Positions 3,969-13,684 of a DNA stretch of 64,000 nt are shown piece after piece. The stretch lies in the sequence record NC_062582.1. One strand, written 5' to 3'. The notes under the pieces are model-generated. The model ran no database searches. It was not told where the DNA came from and saw only the letters and a program-made list of their open reading frames with translations. Positions within the stretch are counted from its first letter, which is position 1; each line of letters begins with the position of its first letter. Both the position numbers and the translations under genes were made by a program.

Positions 3969-6197
3969 ATGTCTTATTTGAAATCGCTGTTGAAAGCTAA
4001 TGCTGATCAAGCTCCAACTACCTTCTCTATGGAGAACTTCCTGGGTCTTCTGGCCGAAGGTCAAGATCTGAGTGGTAGTGTATTTAACGCAGCTCATGGT
4101 CTGACCAAGTCTGTTGGCCTGGAATCCTTTGGTGATGCCAAGCACGAAGAAACCGTTACCATTAGTGCTATGTACAAGAACCTGCAAGGTCTGTTGACTC
4201 GTTCGGGTTTCGAATCGTTCCTGAGTGAAAACAGCCGTGTAGCTGAGAACCAAATCGTTGCTGCTACTACCGCTGCCATCGCTGCTGAAAACCCTAAAGA
4301 GTACATCAAGGCTCTGCGTAACCTGACCAAGGCTCTGCCATCGACCGAAAGCATCCGTACCGTTGAACAATCGTTCGCTGGTCCACACGGTTCGCTGCAA
4401 GTATTCCAAGGTGATGCCGCTAAGAACATCGGCCTGGAAAACTACAACGAGAAATCGCAGCGTGACTTCCGTGTTGTTACCGTTGGTTATAACCTGGCTG
4501 CTAGCCGTCAGGATGAGTTCGCTGAACGTATCTACCCAACTACCGTAATCAACCCGATTGAAGGTGGTGTTGTTCAAGTTCTTCCTTACATCGCTGTACT
4601 GAAAGACGTTCATCACTCGGTTACTGGTGCCCTGTGGGATACCAAAGAAGTAAACATGGTTGAAGCATACCGTGACCCATCCATCCTGGATGATAACGCT
4701 ACCGACCTGATCCCAGCTATCGCTCCTGGTGGCGAGAACCTGAAATACTTCGTAGACCCAGCTCTGATCGCTCCTGAGACTGTAGTTAACGAACAAAACA
4801 TGTCGATCGAAACTGCCCCACTGAAACCAGGTATCAAAGTTGACCTGATGGGTATCTCGAACGCCAACTTGCTGATCAACGCTAACATGCTCGACGTGTC
4901 TGACACCATCGACCCTGCTGGCCGTCTGAAAGCTCTGTACGTTAAATTCGAAGGCGAAGTAATCCGCTTTAAAGTTGACCGCATGCCACGCGCTGTGTTC
5001 CAACCTGACCTGATCGGTGATACCCGTGGTGCTAAGGTTGACTTCTGGACTGACGACCTGTCGGTTTCGGCAATCACCCGTACTATCGGTGGCGCTGCTA
5101 CTTCTGTTATCACTGAACTCGAAACCCGTAAATGGGTACTGCGTATCAGCGTTCAATTCTCCGGCGTTGTTAGCCTGAGCAAAGGCGAATCCCGCTTCAC
5201 CGTTGGTGAGTGCTCGGTTGCTCGCATCCTGAACGAAGATCGTCGTGATATCGATATCACTGCTGGTCCTGGTGCTGCTTTGGTAGCTAAACTGGCTGAT
5301 CTGGAAATCATCGGTTTCGACCTTGATTGCCGCTTCACCAACACCAACCGTCGTCAGCGTGGTCACCTGCTGCAAACTCGTGCCCTGCAATTCCGTCACC
5401 CTATCCCAATGCACGCGCCAGTAACCCTGCCGTTGAGCACCATGGATGAAGAAGGTCCAGGCGAAGTTGTTAAAGCACTGACTGTTAACACCAACATCCG
5501 TAACAGCAACAACGCTGTTAAGACCCTGCTGAACTACCTGGCACAACTGCGTGAACTGACTGGTAGCGGTTTCAACCGTCCATCGATCAACGTTTACGAA
5601 GGTGCTCTGGCTTCGGTAATGCGTCCTACCTACGTTTACGGTAATCTGCACCTGCCAGACGTAATCGATACCCTGAAGTCGAAAGACCGTTGGGACGACG
5701 TTTGCTCGGCGATCCTGAACTACGTCAAAGGTCAACTGTTCCCTGCATACCGGAACTCTAACATTGAAGCTGCTTTCCGTGTTATCTCTGGTAACCAAGA
5801 CGAACGTCCAATCTTCCTGTTCTGCTCGGACAAAGAGATTGCTAACTACCTGATGACCAAAGGCGATGACCGTACCCTGGGTGCTTACCTGGAATACGAT
5901 ATCGTATCGACCAACAACGAACTGTTTGACGGTAAGCTGGTAGTAGTACCGACCCGTAAGAACCCAACCGAGAACGACATCCTGTCCTTCGGTCAGTTCT
6001 TCTACGTATCGACTATCGTAGCCGACCTGCCAATCAGCCGTGGCGGTAACCAGATCACTCGCGAAATCGCAGCGATCCCATTCAACCTGCACATCAACAA
6101 CATTCCTTTCGCTCTGGAATTCGACATCTCCGGCTTCGCCGACGTGATGGGTACTTCTCAGTGGAACAAGCCGTTGATTGACGCTGTTAAGGCTTGA
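3969..6197 (+). CDS. Major capsid protein precursor (phiKZ gp120-like)
   Basis: 742 aa; strongly biased codon usage; SME/GLE/GLE cleavage-type sites in the first 160 aa; size and gene order match phiKZ MCP. Confidence 0.9.
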   Translation: MSYLKSLLKANADQAPTTFSMENFLGLLAEGQDLSGSVFNAAHGLTKSVGLESFGDAKHEETVTISAMYKNLQGLLTRSGFESFLSENSRVAENQIVAATTAAIAAENPKEYIKALRNLTKALPSTESIRTVEQSFAGPHGSLQVFQGDAAKNIGLENYNEKSQRDFRVVTVGYNLAASRQDEFAERIYPTTVINPIEGGVVQVLPYIAVLKDVHHSVTGALWDTKEVNMVEAYRDPSILDDNATDLIPAIAPGGENLKYFVDPALIAPETVVNEQNMSIETAPLKPGIKVDLMGISNANLLINANMLDVSDTIDPAGRLKALYVKFEGEVIRFKVDRMPRAVFQPDLIGDTRGAKVDFWTDDLSVSAITRTIGGAATSVITELETRKWVLRISVQFSGVVSLSKGESRFTVGECSVARILNEDRRDIDITAGPGAALVAKLADLEIIGFDLDCRFTNTNRRQRGHLLQTRALQFRHPIPMHAPVTLPLSTMDEEGPGEVVKALTVNTNIRNSNNAVKTLLNYLAQLRELTGSGFNRPSINVYEGALASVMRPTYVYGNLHLPDVIDTLKSKDRWDDVCSAILNYVKGQLFPAYRNSNIEAAFRVISGNQDERPIFLFCSDKEIANYLMTKGDDRTLGAYLEYDIVSTNNELFDGKLVVVPTRKNPTENDILSFGQFFYVSTIVADLPISRGGNQITREIAAIPFNLHINNIPFALEFDISGFADVMGTSQWNKPLIDAVKA

Positions 6198-11587: not shown

Positions 11588-11625
11588 ACGACATAAAGCC
11601 CCTACCTTCGGGTAGGGGTTTATAT
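11588..11625. terminator. Hairpin; 26-nt core identical to 14041-14066
   Basis: ATAAAGCCCCTACC-TTCG-GGTAGGGG at 11593-11618. Confidence 0.8.
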
Positions 11626-11641
11626 CAACTAGGGGAAATGA

Positions 11642-12061
11642 ATGAAACTCGATCGCCTATTTGCAATGATCAACCGTATTGAAATCTTTCAGGATACTGG
11701 GTATTATTCAGGCAACCCTACCCATGGATTTACACCAGATCACCAATACTTCACAATTGATCTAAAGAACATTGATGATAAACAGGCATACATAATGAAC
11801 AACATTAAGATTGCTCTGTTTGTTAACTACCGTAAATCACGAGTAGAAGCCAAAGTGGGAAAACCTGATTATATATTGTTTACTGATAACCGTCTAGGCG
11901 AGTTACTAGAGCAAGAAGAAAAGGTTATGGGGTCGTATCTCAAGTACGATGTTGAGAAGCGTGAAGAACCTTATTTTACCAATACCGTTTTGGTGGTTCC
12001 CGTACTCCCCGATAAGCCTGAAGTTGAAATCCCCAACGTATTAGAGTTTGGTATTAAATAA
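11642..12061 (+). CDS. Free-standing paralogue of the MCP C-terminal region
   Basis: Hand alignment to MCP aa ~553-675 in this window, e.g. YIMNNIKIALFVNYRKSRVEA vs AILNYVKGQLFPAYRNSNIEA and MGSYLKYD vs LGAYLEYD. Confidence 0.8.
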   Translation: MKLDRLFAMINRIEIFQDTGYYSGNPTHGFTPDHQYFTIDLKNIDDKQAYIMNNIKIALFVNYRKSRVEAKVGKPDYILFTDNRLGELLEQEEKVMGSYLKYDVEKREEPYFTNTVLVVPVLPDKPEVEIPNVLEFGIK

Positions 12062-12071
12062 GGAAGTATGT

Positions 12072-12485
12072 ATGCTCATCCCAGTCAATAAAGTAACCGA
12101 TAATCTTTATCGTTTTACAATTGATTTGAATCTAACTCCAGAAGGCTTCGAAAATAACCTGGAACATTCTAACTGGCGCCGTCTATTGTTAACCGGTAAT
12201 AGTTATGCCGAGCTAGGTTGCCCAACAGTGGATGATCATATTGATCCACGTATTGCTTTAATGCGATTGCGACAAATTTATCCTGAACGTACCTGTGGTC
12301 ATATTAGTGTGAGTGGTAATGATAAGGATCGTATGTATTGCGATCTTAAACCACATGGCCCGCACGCACATATTTTGAAATACCTTGATTCCATCCGAAA
12401 GCTGTTCGTCTCGCCACGTCTTATCTTTAATGAAGATAGCGAGATTGTAAATATCATTACCTTCGATGTAGTAGAAGTAAATTAA
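12072..12485 (+). CDS. Prohead-protease-like protein (phiKZ gp175/T4 gp21 fold), probably inactive
   Basis: YAELGCP, RLRQI-TCGHI, KPHGP, VSPR and TFDVVE follow the remembered protease motifs in order; His of ELGHP appears as Cys; ATG 12072 has an AAGGA RBS. Confidence 0.6.
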   Translation: MLIPVNKVTDNLYRFTIDLNLTPEGFENNLEHSNWRRLLLTGNSYAELGCPTVDDHIDPRIALMRLRQIYPERTCGHISVSGNDKDRMYCDLKPHGPHAHILKYLDSIRKLFVSPRLIFNEDSEIVNIITFDVVEVN

Positions 12486-12540: not shown

Positions 12541-13269
12541 ATGATGGCAATTCAAAACCTGCTGCAAAAGACTGGCGTTGCTAAACTCCTGCATCGCGAG
12601 CAGTATCCTGAAATCGAATTTGATTTCAGTAATAGTGATCTCGTAGAGGCTGATGACTTCTACGATGTACCCACTAAACGTGAACTTCCAATTAAAGGTA
12701 AGTCTAACCTGACTTACCGTACCCTGGACGACATGTCTCTGTGGACGTGGAAACGTAATGCGTACGTAGAACATAACCCGTATGCTTTCGGTATCACTCA
12801 ACAATACAACACTGTTACTCCAGAGCAGTTCGAACAGACTGTTATAGCAGCAACTGACGAATCTCACAATCGTTTGGTTCTGGAAGATCCTCGTCATCTT
12901 CCGTCGATCAGTATTGACGAAGTTCGTGATGGCGCTGATCCACGTATGGCGATGCTGTACAACCTGCTGGCATTGCGCGAAGACCTGCGTACGATCAATG
13001 ACCTGAAGATTCCATTCGCCTCTATGGTCAAAGGGAATCTTCCTACGCCGTATCTGCGTAACAGTGCTAAGCAGAACGTATTGGATAACTGGTTCTTCCA
13101 GAGCCATACTGCCTTTAGTCTGTTGTTGCGTAGCGCATGTAAAAGTGAAAAGTCTGTTATCCAGAACTCGATCGCAGACGTACTGTTCACGAAGGGTGCA
13201 CATCTGCACTGGAACAAAGAACGCGGTAACGCTGTATTCAAAGACGGTGAGTTCGAGGTGAATCTGTAA
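12541..13269 (+). CDS. Hypothetical protein, 242 aa
   Basis: GAGGA RBS, biased codons; family not recognised. Confidence 0.7.
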   Translation: MMAIQNLLQKTGVAKLLHREQYPEIEFDFSNSDLVEADDFYDVPTKRELPIKGKSNLTYRTLDDMSLWTWKRNAYVEHNPYAFGITQQYNTVTPEQFEQTVIAATDESHNRLVLEDPRHLPSISIDEVRDGADPRMAMLYNLLALREDLRTINDLKIPFASMVKGNLPTPYLRNSAKQNVLDNWFFQSHTAFSLLLRSACKSEKSVIQNSIADVLFTKGAHLHWNKERGNAVFKDGEFEVNL

Positions 13270-13484
13270 TGCCTTACAAGCATAACGGCGTGTACCTAAA
13301 CAAAGCTGGGTACGATCCCTTTATAATCGTGCGTGATTATCATGCAGGTTTTGAAGCCTTGCGTATGCAGTTGCAAAAGCATACTGGTGATTGCCCTATT
13401 GATCATGGGGAACGCACCAACAAGAAACTTAAAGACCAACCCTACCACATGCGTGGTCCTAACGGTAAAATGAGGAAGTGGTGA
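13269..13484 (+). CDS. Small basic protein A with a GERTN-K-KDQP motif
   Basis: TAATG coupling to the upstream gene; C-terminal 25 aa paralogous to the next ORF. Confidence 0.7.
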   Translation: MPYKHNGVYLNKAGYDPFIIVRDYHAGFEALRMQLQKHTGDCPIDHGERTNKKLKDQPYHMRGPNGKMRKW

Positions 13485-13684
13485 TGTTCGGACTATCGAA
13501 TATGTTTAACTTTAACCCACCCGAATCCACAGGTAAAGAAAAGCTGGAAGAACTCTGTGGTATTCACTGGGGTTCCTCTTACAAAGGCGAAATGAAAAAC
13601 GATAAGGGCGAACGCACTAATCGTAAAATTAAAGACCAGCCGTTCTATCATCGTCGTAATGACGGTAAAATGAAAAACTACTAA
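13484..13684 (+). CDS. Small basic protein B with a GERTN-K-KDQP motif
   Basis: TGATG coupling, GAGGA RBS; paralogue of the previous ORF. Confidence 0.7.
   Translation: MFGLSNMFNFNPPESTGKEKLEELCGIHWGSSYKGEMKNDKGERTNRKIKDQPFYHRRNDGKMKNY

Follow-up and report, generated by a model that had tools for sequence, protein, structure and literature searches.

We analysed a 64,000-nt stretch of DNA (the window), which corresponds to positions 124001-188000 of the 309-kb genome of Pseudomonas phage Phabio (MF042360 / NC_062582). Phabio is a phiKZ-like jumbo phage whose host is P. fluorescens SBW25. Within the window lies gp193, for which a first-pass annotation, made from the sequence alone, had proposed a probably inactive paralogue of the prohead protease, next to a fragment of the capsid protein. 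Our results suggested that gp193 is indeed a small relative of the phage head proteases which has lost their chemistry and is kept under selection. The gene, and the sites in it on which the analysis turns, are these (window coordinates):

12072-12485, + strand: gp193 (MZD05_gp193), 137 aa, from the ATG at 12072 to the TAA at 12483-12485; a RefSeq feature, here read as a mini, non-catalytic paralogue of the prohead protease.
12061-12066, + strand: ribosome-binding site AGGAAG, 5 nt upstream of the gp193 ATG, read from the sequence.
12219-12221, + strand: codon TGC of Cys50, at the catalytic-His position of the real prohead proteases, from alignments.
12411-12413, + strand: codon TCG of Ser114, at the catalytic-Ser position (Ser153 of SPN3US gp245), from alignments.
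12417-12419, + strand: codon CGT of Arg116, invariant across the mini proteins and the real proteases, from alignments.
12465-12467, + strand: codon GAT of Asp132, the third triad position, likewise invariant across both groups, from alignments.

The start was placed at ATG 12072, and not at TTG 12048, because the homologues begin with M-[LMI]-IPV. All the peptides quoted in the first-pass annotation were present in the 137-aa open reading frame (ORF) at 12072-12485: YAELGCP (aa 45-51), RLRQIYPERTCGHI (aa 65-78), LKPHGP (aa 92-97), FVSPR (aa 112-116) and IITFDVVE (aa 128-135). The protease motifs with which it had matched them follow in the same order and do correspond to them, but their exact forms were approximate: the real proteases carry E[YF]KHPEP, RIRQIDDxRVCAHI, KP[YF]GPF, [CF]SVRSI and STWD. 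What gp193 has in common with the S80 proteases phiKZ gp175, 201phi2-1 gp268, SPN3US gp245 and Phabio gp258 is the series E-x-x-[H]-P, R-[IL]-R-Q-I...R-V-C-[AG]-H-I, K-P-x-G-P, x-S-x-R and T-[FW]-D.

gp193 is a homologue of the phiKZ-type (MEROPS S80) prohead proteases, with a resemblance far above chance. It matched PHROG 7478 (147 positions, labelled 'head maturation protease') over its full length with an E value of 4.7e-41, and matched weakly PHROG 3014, which holds the full-length proteases. In Pfam it hit Peptidase_S80 (PF20034, the phiKZ gp175 family; E 5.4e-4, profile positions 51-173 of 229) with a score of 19.6 bits, which is under the curated gathering cut-off of 23.4 bits. We then built one profile from 23 mini-family members and another from four bona fide proteases (phiKZ gp175, Phabio gp258, 201phi2-1 gp268 and PhiPA3 gp205), and compared them using hhalign. 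The two aligned with a probability of 98.7% and an E value of 3.9e-16, with aa 30-134 of gp193 placed against aa 69-193 of phiKZ gp175.

Structure prediction also bore out the proposed paralogy. The AlphaFold2 model of gp193, built with 20 homologues in the alignment, had a mean predicted local distance difference test score (pLDDT) of 92.2 and a predicted template modelling score (pTM) of 0.84. When the model was searched against the PDB with Foldseek, the top match, and the sole one at probability 1.0, was the T4 prohead protease gp21 (5JBL). A VIA structure alignment with 5JBL gave a Z of 11.8 and a root-mean-square deviation of 2.7 A over 123 of the 137 residues, spanning chain residues 10-173; in the same ranking the next unrelated match had a Z of 4.7, and the herpesvirus assemblin proteases of Kaposi's sarcoma-associated herpesvirus (KSHV) and human cytomegalovirus (HCMV), a more distant likeness of fold, had a Z of ~3.5. 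A structure search of the ESM Atlas reached a Peptidase_S80 cluster with a template modelling score (TM) of 0.75. Querying the PDB by sequence, whether gp193, the family profile or the four-protease profile was used, returned nothing meaningful, so that T4 gp21 was reached by structure comparison alone. In the model, gp193 appears as a complete, compact protease core barrel and not as a ragged fragment, with a short N-terminal beta-hairpin predicted in place of the ~60 N-terminal residues of the S80 enzymes. Its fold is the same as that of T4 gp21 (MEROPS S77), with 11-13% sequence identity, but gp193 has no intact triad and does not lie beside scaffold genes.

The catalytic positions were then mapped. 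By alignment, Cys50, Ser114 and Asp132 of gp193 correspond to His77, Ser153 and Asp178 of SPN3US gp245, which form the catalytic triad of that enzyme (PMC5694885), and to His89, Ser168 and Asp191 of phiKZ gp175; His85 of T4 gp21 aligns with Cys50 as well. The S153A mutant of the SPN3US protease shows no auto-cleavage (PMC7411985). The replacement of the catalytic His by Cys, as first proposed, was thus confirmed. The claim that the Ser and the Asp are retained proved correct in Phabio and in a few of its close relatives; in the family as a whole Asp132 is invariant, but the Ser column reads S/A/T/K/G. Since this column drifts, the retention of Ser114 in Phabio is no evidence that an active site or a substrate site has been preserved.

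The loss of the catalytic His-Ser pair extends to the whole gp193 group. Across 20 relatives, the residues in the His column are C, C, N, H, R, H, H, N, P, P, S, T, with E in the other eight, and those in the Ser column are S, S, A, A, S, A, A, A, A, A, T, A, with K in the other eight. His and Ser occur together in none of the 20, and PhiPA3 gp143 has His with Gly at the two positions. Position 50 reads C/C/N/H/R/H/H/N/P in the Phabio-like clade, whose members are 50-85% identical, and ranks 6 of 137 there in column variability; it is flanked by the invariant Glu47 and Pro51. In the 201phi2-1-like clade, Glu is fixed at the His position and Lys stands at the Ser position, from which we infer that a Glu/Lys salt bridge replaces the His-Ser contact there. 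The residues invariant in both the mini proteins and the real enzymes are Glu47, Pro51, Arg65, Arg116 and Asp132, with Cys75 and Gly96 nearly so. Since Arg116 and Asp132 are kept even where His and Ser are gone, their role is probably structural, and their conservation has little bearing on catalysis.

gp193 is also much shorter than the enzymes. It has about half the length of the S80 proteases and ends 5 residues past Asp132, whereas the real enzymes extend ~75-90 residues past the triad Asp, including the conserved SPALE site. Missing from gp193 are the Gly-rich/ANK/SPALE segment and the C-terminal propeptide of ~75 residues. In the SPN3US protease, this propeptide is cleaved off by auto-cleavage and was inferred to direct the enzyme into the prohead (PMC5694885).

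A full protease was found elsewhere in the genome, where the first-pass annotation had suggested looking for one. Phabio gp258 lies at genome positions 188416-189243, ~400 bp past the end of the window, and encodes 275 aa with 74% identity to 201phi2-1 gp268, a Peptidase_S80 match with an E value of 1.2e-95, and intact His, Ser and Asp. The functional head proteases are gp258 in Phabio and gp268 in 201phi2-1. A virion mass-spectrometry annotation is present on 201phi2-1 gp268, while 201phi2-1 gp206, the orthologue of gp193, carries none. The absence of a His+Ser pair in the 20 relatives, the missing C-terminal region and the intact triad of gp258 together sustain the proposal that gp193 is an inactive paralogue. 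RefSeq gives the product name 'head maturation protease' to gp193, to gp342, to 201phi2-1 gp206 and gp210, and to the Viktualia homologues; for these mini proteins the name is an over-annotation, inherited from the PHROG label. Taken on its own, gp193 is therefore mainly a case of annotation correction: judged by its residues, it almost certainly cannot cut, and the real enzyme is gp258.

We also noted two features of the gp193 sequence near or outside the former active site. Residues Asp54, Asp55, His56, Asp58, His98 and His100 (window 12231-12245 and 12363-12371) show little or no variation in the Phabio-like clade and differ in the 201phi2-1-like clade; these loop residues, which lie beside the former active site, are a possible binding site for a metal or ligand, specific to the clade. 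In addition, G25-F26-E27 (window 12144-12152), of which Gly-Phe is invariant and Glu27 mostly conserved, fits S/A/G/T-X-E, the cleavage motif reported for the 201phi2-1 protease (PMC5694885). The GFE motif might be a pseudo-substrate, a real cleavage site or a chance occurrence.

The selection test indicated that gp193 is functional. In codon alignments with six metagenomic relatives, its ratio of nonsynonymous to synonymous divergence (dN/dS, or omega) was 0.08-0.12 where the synonymous divergence (dS) was unsaturated, the same range as in the flanking genes (0.05-0.15 for gp191 and 0.08-0.13 for gp194 in comparable pairs). The ORF was intact in every relative and its length constant within 1-8 residues. 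This purifying selection (dN/dS ~0.1) points to a functional pseudo-enzyme and not to a relic.

The comparison with the closest metagenomic relative, L015, revealed a mosaic pattern. While the 3.8 kb around gp193 is mostly 85-97% identical in nucleotides, aa 1-103 of gp193 (window 12072-12380) are encoded by sequence only 75-79% identical, with a dS of 1.6 and an omega of 0.09. The last 34 codons show zero amino-acid changes and a dS of 0.32. Since the divergent N-terminal part combines a high dS with a low omega, it looks like the product of recombination with a more distant allele, not of positive selection. A second dip, to 71% identity, is found at 13095-13244, in gp194.

The position of the gene is conserved. 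The order major capsid protein (MCP), two small genes, non-virion RNA polymerase (nvRNAP) subunit, gp124-like gene, mini protease, gp125-like gene is common to Phabio and 201phi2-1, and the mini protease lies between the gp124-like and gp125-like genes, downstream of the MCP and of an nvRNAP subunit gene, in four phages (Phabio, 201phi2-1, Viktualia and PhiPA3) and in seven metagenomic contigs from six distinct genomes. gp193 thus sits in a conserved block, with nvRNAP-subunit genes on one side and virion genes on the other. In phiKZ, an 80-nt spacer separates gp124 and gp125, with no mini-protease gene at the locus, and the gp193-type gene is accessory. No homologue was detected in phiKZ by tblastn with the mini copy of phage DT01, nor a second mini-protease copy in the window by a hidden Markov model (HMM) scan of all its ORFs. 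In public RNA sequencing data, no run from a Phabio infection was found; related sequence turned up only in DNA metagenomes and in two wastewater RNA runs.

The idea of an inactive paralogue is not new, and genes of the gp193 kind were already described in 2017. Ali et al. 2017 (Front Microbiol, PMC5694885) reported diverged 'cryptic protease' paralogues in giant phages, truncated and presumed to have lost their activity, and named 201phi2-1 gp206 (145 aa), PhiPA3 gp143 (136 aa) and SPN3US gp117, the last of which has the Ser and the Asp aligned but not the His (PMC5694885). In the searchable literature we found no later paper giving these paralogues a function. gp193 has its syntenic orthologue in 201phi2-1 gp206, which lies between the same genes and is 32% identical to it (E 4e-14); gp193 also aligned with PhiPA3 gp143 with an hhalign E value of 5.1e-12. 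Like the published cryptic copies (gp206, gp143 and gp117), it is a second, short copy (~125-170 aa) beside a bona fide protease, lacks the C-terminal region and does not conserve the catalytic His. It differs from them in having a capsid-fragment gene just upstream, and the residues of the dead triad vary from one phage to another: Cys/Ser in Phabio gp193, Glu/Lys in 201phi2-1 gp206 and His/Gly in PhiPA3 gp143. Moreover, whereas the published view of these copies is that they are truncated, our model of gp193 predicts the complete compact core barrel, equivalent to chain residues 10-173 of T4 gp21.

A structure search of viral proteins uncovered further mini copies: gp341 and gp342 in Phabio, gp210 in 201phi2-1, gp142 in PhiPA3, and others in Psa21 and in Erwinia, Klebsiella and Yersinia jumbo phages. 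PHROG 7478 was the best-scoring PHROG for gp341, gp342, 201phi2-1 gp210 and PhiPA3 gp142 and gp143. The mini-protease family is therefore larger than earlier reported, with at least three copies in Phabio. The copies located outside the window include:

Phabio genome 247664-248436 (L021:3615-3989 and 4001-4387): gp341 (124 aa) and gp342 (128 aa), in tandem; both without the His and the Ser.
L002:7824-8201: 201phi2-1 gp210, 125 aa; the alignment places His, Ser and Asp at the three triad positions, a combination seen in no member of the gp193 group.
L014:8092-9026: PhiPA3 gp142 and gp143, in tandem at the syntenic locus; gp142, the upstream one, has 169 aa, the protease fold by a match in BFVD, and a PHROG 7478 match with an E value of 1e-3.

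gp341 and gp342 lie immediately upstream of the PRPS-like gp343 and near the NAMPT-like gp347, a pair which resembles the NARP1 NAD-reconstitution counter-defence. The mini copy of phage D6 lies downstream of NAMPT and has thymidylate synthase and RNA ligase on either side, and that of DT01 follows dCTP deaminase. To judge from its aligned residues, 201phi2-1 gp210 may be a minimal protease that is active, or may show the pattern by coincidence. A maximum-likelihood tree of the mini and the real proteases was largely unresolved: the clade of real S80 enzymes was well supported (100/97), the one uniting gp341, gp342, gp210 and the D6 copy was weaker (87/85), and T4 gp21 was misplaced by long-branch effects. 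Giant phages keep several small, fast-diverging, selected copies of the capsid-protease fold without its chemistry.

Some other candidate relationships were tried and rejected. T4 gp68, a small prohead core protein encoded next to gene 21, was considered as an analogous dead paralogue and showed no similarity by BLASTP, hhalign or Pfam. Phabio gp197 proved unrelated to 201phi2-1 gp210, and a 1298-aa match (P0011) in the representative search was a low-complexity repeat artefact.

What might such a protein do? The first-pass annotation had proposed that it binds a substrate or an immune sensor and does not cut, a function that is speculative. We consider it probable that gp193 is a pseudo-protease, a compact and complete core which the phage keeps in addition to gp258, its true head-maturation protease, and which acts by binding. 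It would neither cleave peptide bonds nor be packaged into heads, and would act in the infected cell through binding instead of cutting. It may engage something that the protease core itself contacts, be it the protease or the Glu-ending cleavage motifs. Proteolysis outside the prohead would in this way be restrained or buffered, much as other proteases are held in check by their dead paralogues. Dead protease paralogues that regulate active ones by binding include cFLIP and vFLIP, which act on caspase-8, and the iRhoms. By analogy, gp193 may be a comparable case, a dead paralogue retained under selection beside the active enzyme, although the folds are unrelated. Modulation of the true protease, or of its Glu-ending motifs, outside the prohead is a tentative proposal, but it is the likeliest among the specific mechanisms we considered.

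Some observations speak against a non-catalytic gp193. Phabio gp193 has kept Ser114 and Asp132, and H56, H77, H98 and H100 lie in nearby loops, which strictly leaves room for an unconventional catalytic arrangement in gp193 alone. The inactivity of the mini-protease members is itself something we infer from their residues. Finally, since the distant gp210 carries His, Ser and Asp, small size alone is no proof of inactivity.

Because the activity of prohead proteases is reported to trigger cyclic oligonucleotide-based antiphage signalling systems (CBASS), a conserved dead mimic is a candidate not only for protease regulation but also for immune evasion. gp193 could then be a counter-defence decoy that binds host sensors of prohead-protease activity, such as the activation loop of the CBASS CD-NTase (a nucleotidyltransferase of the cGAS/DncV type), shielding them or masking the protease. 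Cleavage of this CD-NTase loop by a prohead protease activates CBASS (2026 preprint, PMC12991175), and escape mutations map to prohead proteases (preprint 10.1101/2023.05.21.541620). The mini family is accessory and multi-copy, with fast-diverging paralogues; the position once held by the active-site His is hypervariable between close relatives; and other mini copies lie among metabolic, possibly anti-defence genes (gp341/gp342 by the NARP1-like pair and the D6 copy by NAMPT). However, this is guilt by association only: gp193 itself is in the conserved block of nvRNAP and virion genes and not in an anti-defence island, its orthologues are under ordinary purifying selection (omega ~0.1), and its divergence from L015 points to recombination. 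We therefore regard the decoy as unlikely for gp193, and give equally little credence to its extension to the PHROG 7478 mini family as a whole, whose members would be dead-mimic counter-measures that occupy prohead-protease sensors, or would cap the real protease in the cytoplasm until it enters the prohead. Somewhat less doubtful is a transient role in head assembly, with gp193 co-assembling with the scaffold or core, or chaperoning capsid or protease subunits, and then being degraded or expelled. This would explain the absence from mature virions, and it agrees with the syntenic position downstream of the MCP gene in Phabio, 201phi2-1, Viktualia and PhiPA3, with a fold common to a prohead core component and with the match of G25-F26-E27 to the S/A/G/T-X-E cleavage motif. 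But the GFE motif may be coincidence, gp193 is without the C-terminal region by which the protease is presumed to reach the prohead, phiKZ builds its heads without this gene, and the paralogues are far from the head genes.

The remaining explanations fare worse. That gp193 is the active head-maturation protease, or a second one, follows the RefSeq and PHROG label and the presence of Ser114 and Asp132. We hold this to be highly improbable, with a Cys in place of the His general base, His and Ser columns unconstrained in the orthologues, the post-Asp segment and the propeptide missing, a score below the Pfam gathering threshold, and the full-length, intact-triad gp258 in the same genome. Scarcely better placed is a functionless duplication remnant drifting towards loss: the loss of the catalytic residues and the accessory distribution would fit it, but dN/dS is ~0.1 over a saturated synonymous divergence, the ORF is intact in all relatives, the predicted domain is compact and very confident, and several motifs are invariant. 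Whatever probability is then left goes to an unrelated neofunctionalisation of gp193.

The gene upstream of gp193 and the element that precedes it are as follows:

11642-12061, + strand: gp192, 139 aa, a diverged copy of the MCP's C-terminal part, from a Pfam match and its identity to the Phabio MCP.
11599-11618 (region 11597-11625), no strand assigned: GC-rich hairpin, directly after the gp191 stop and followed by TTTATA; a terminator scan scored it on the - strand.

gp192 matched the Pfam family PhiKZ_MCP with an E value of 2.8e-4 (positions 482-583 of 635), and aa 576-675 of the Phabio MCP with 28% identity and an E value of 1e-9. The first-pass annotation was thus right that the 139-aa neighbour is a copy of a capsid-protein fragment, and had suggested a pull-down of the two proteins; as a conserved partner, the neighbour did not hold up. 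gp192 is present in three of the seven distinct Phabio-like genomes examined, namely Phabio, L015 (48-467) and L016 (1704-2123), and absent from the other four (L010, L017, L011/L012 and L018), in which the mini-protease gene comes directly after the gp191-like gene. In 201phi2-1, the slot of gp192 is taken by gp205, a small gene unrelated to it. No stand-alone homologue of gp192 was found in the other phages of the GenBank collection. Since gp192 is absent from most of the relatives examined, it is not an obligate partner of gp193.

The divergence of gp192 is out of step with that of its surroundings. Between Phabio and L015, gp192 has 96% amino-acid identity and a dS of 0.12, against a dS of 1.03 for the adjoining gp193 and of 0.7-1.0 for the flanking genes; between Phabio and L016, its identity is 49% and its dN/dS 0.37. 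gp192 behaves like a mobile or variable cassette inserted upstream of gp193.

All the Phabio-like contigs have kept the hairpin, whose stem shows compensatory changes in L010 and L011, and it precedes gp192 where this gene is present and otherwise the mini-protease gene directly. It is likely to be a shared terminator or RNA element. Several P. aeruginosa jumbo phages, among them PS119XW, phiHQ and BRkr, carry the same 32 nt with an identity of 97-100%.

Downstream of gp194, gp195 (13269-13484, 71 aa) and gp196 (13484-13684, 66 aa) are adjacent paralogues, with 47% identity over 34 aa (E 4e-10). Both match PHROG 32646, of unknown function, and have in common the C-terminal basic motif GERTN-[KR]-K-[LI]-KDQP...GKM.

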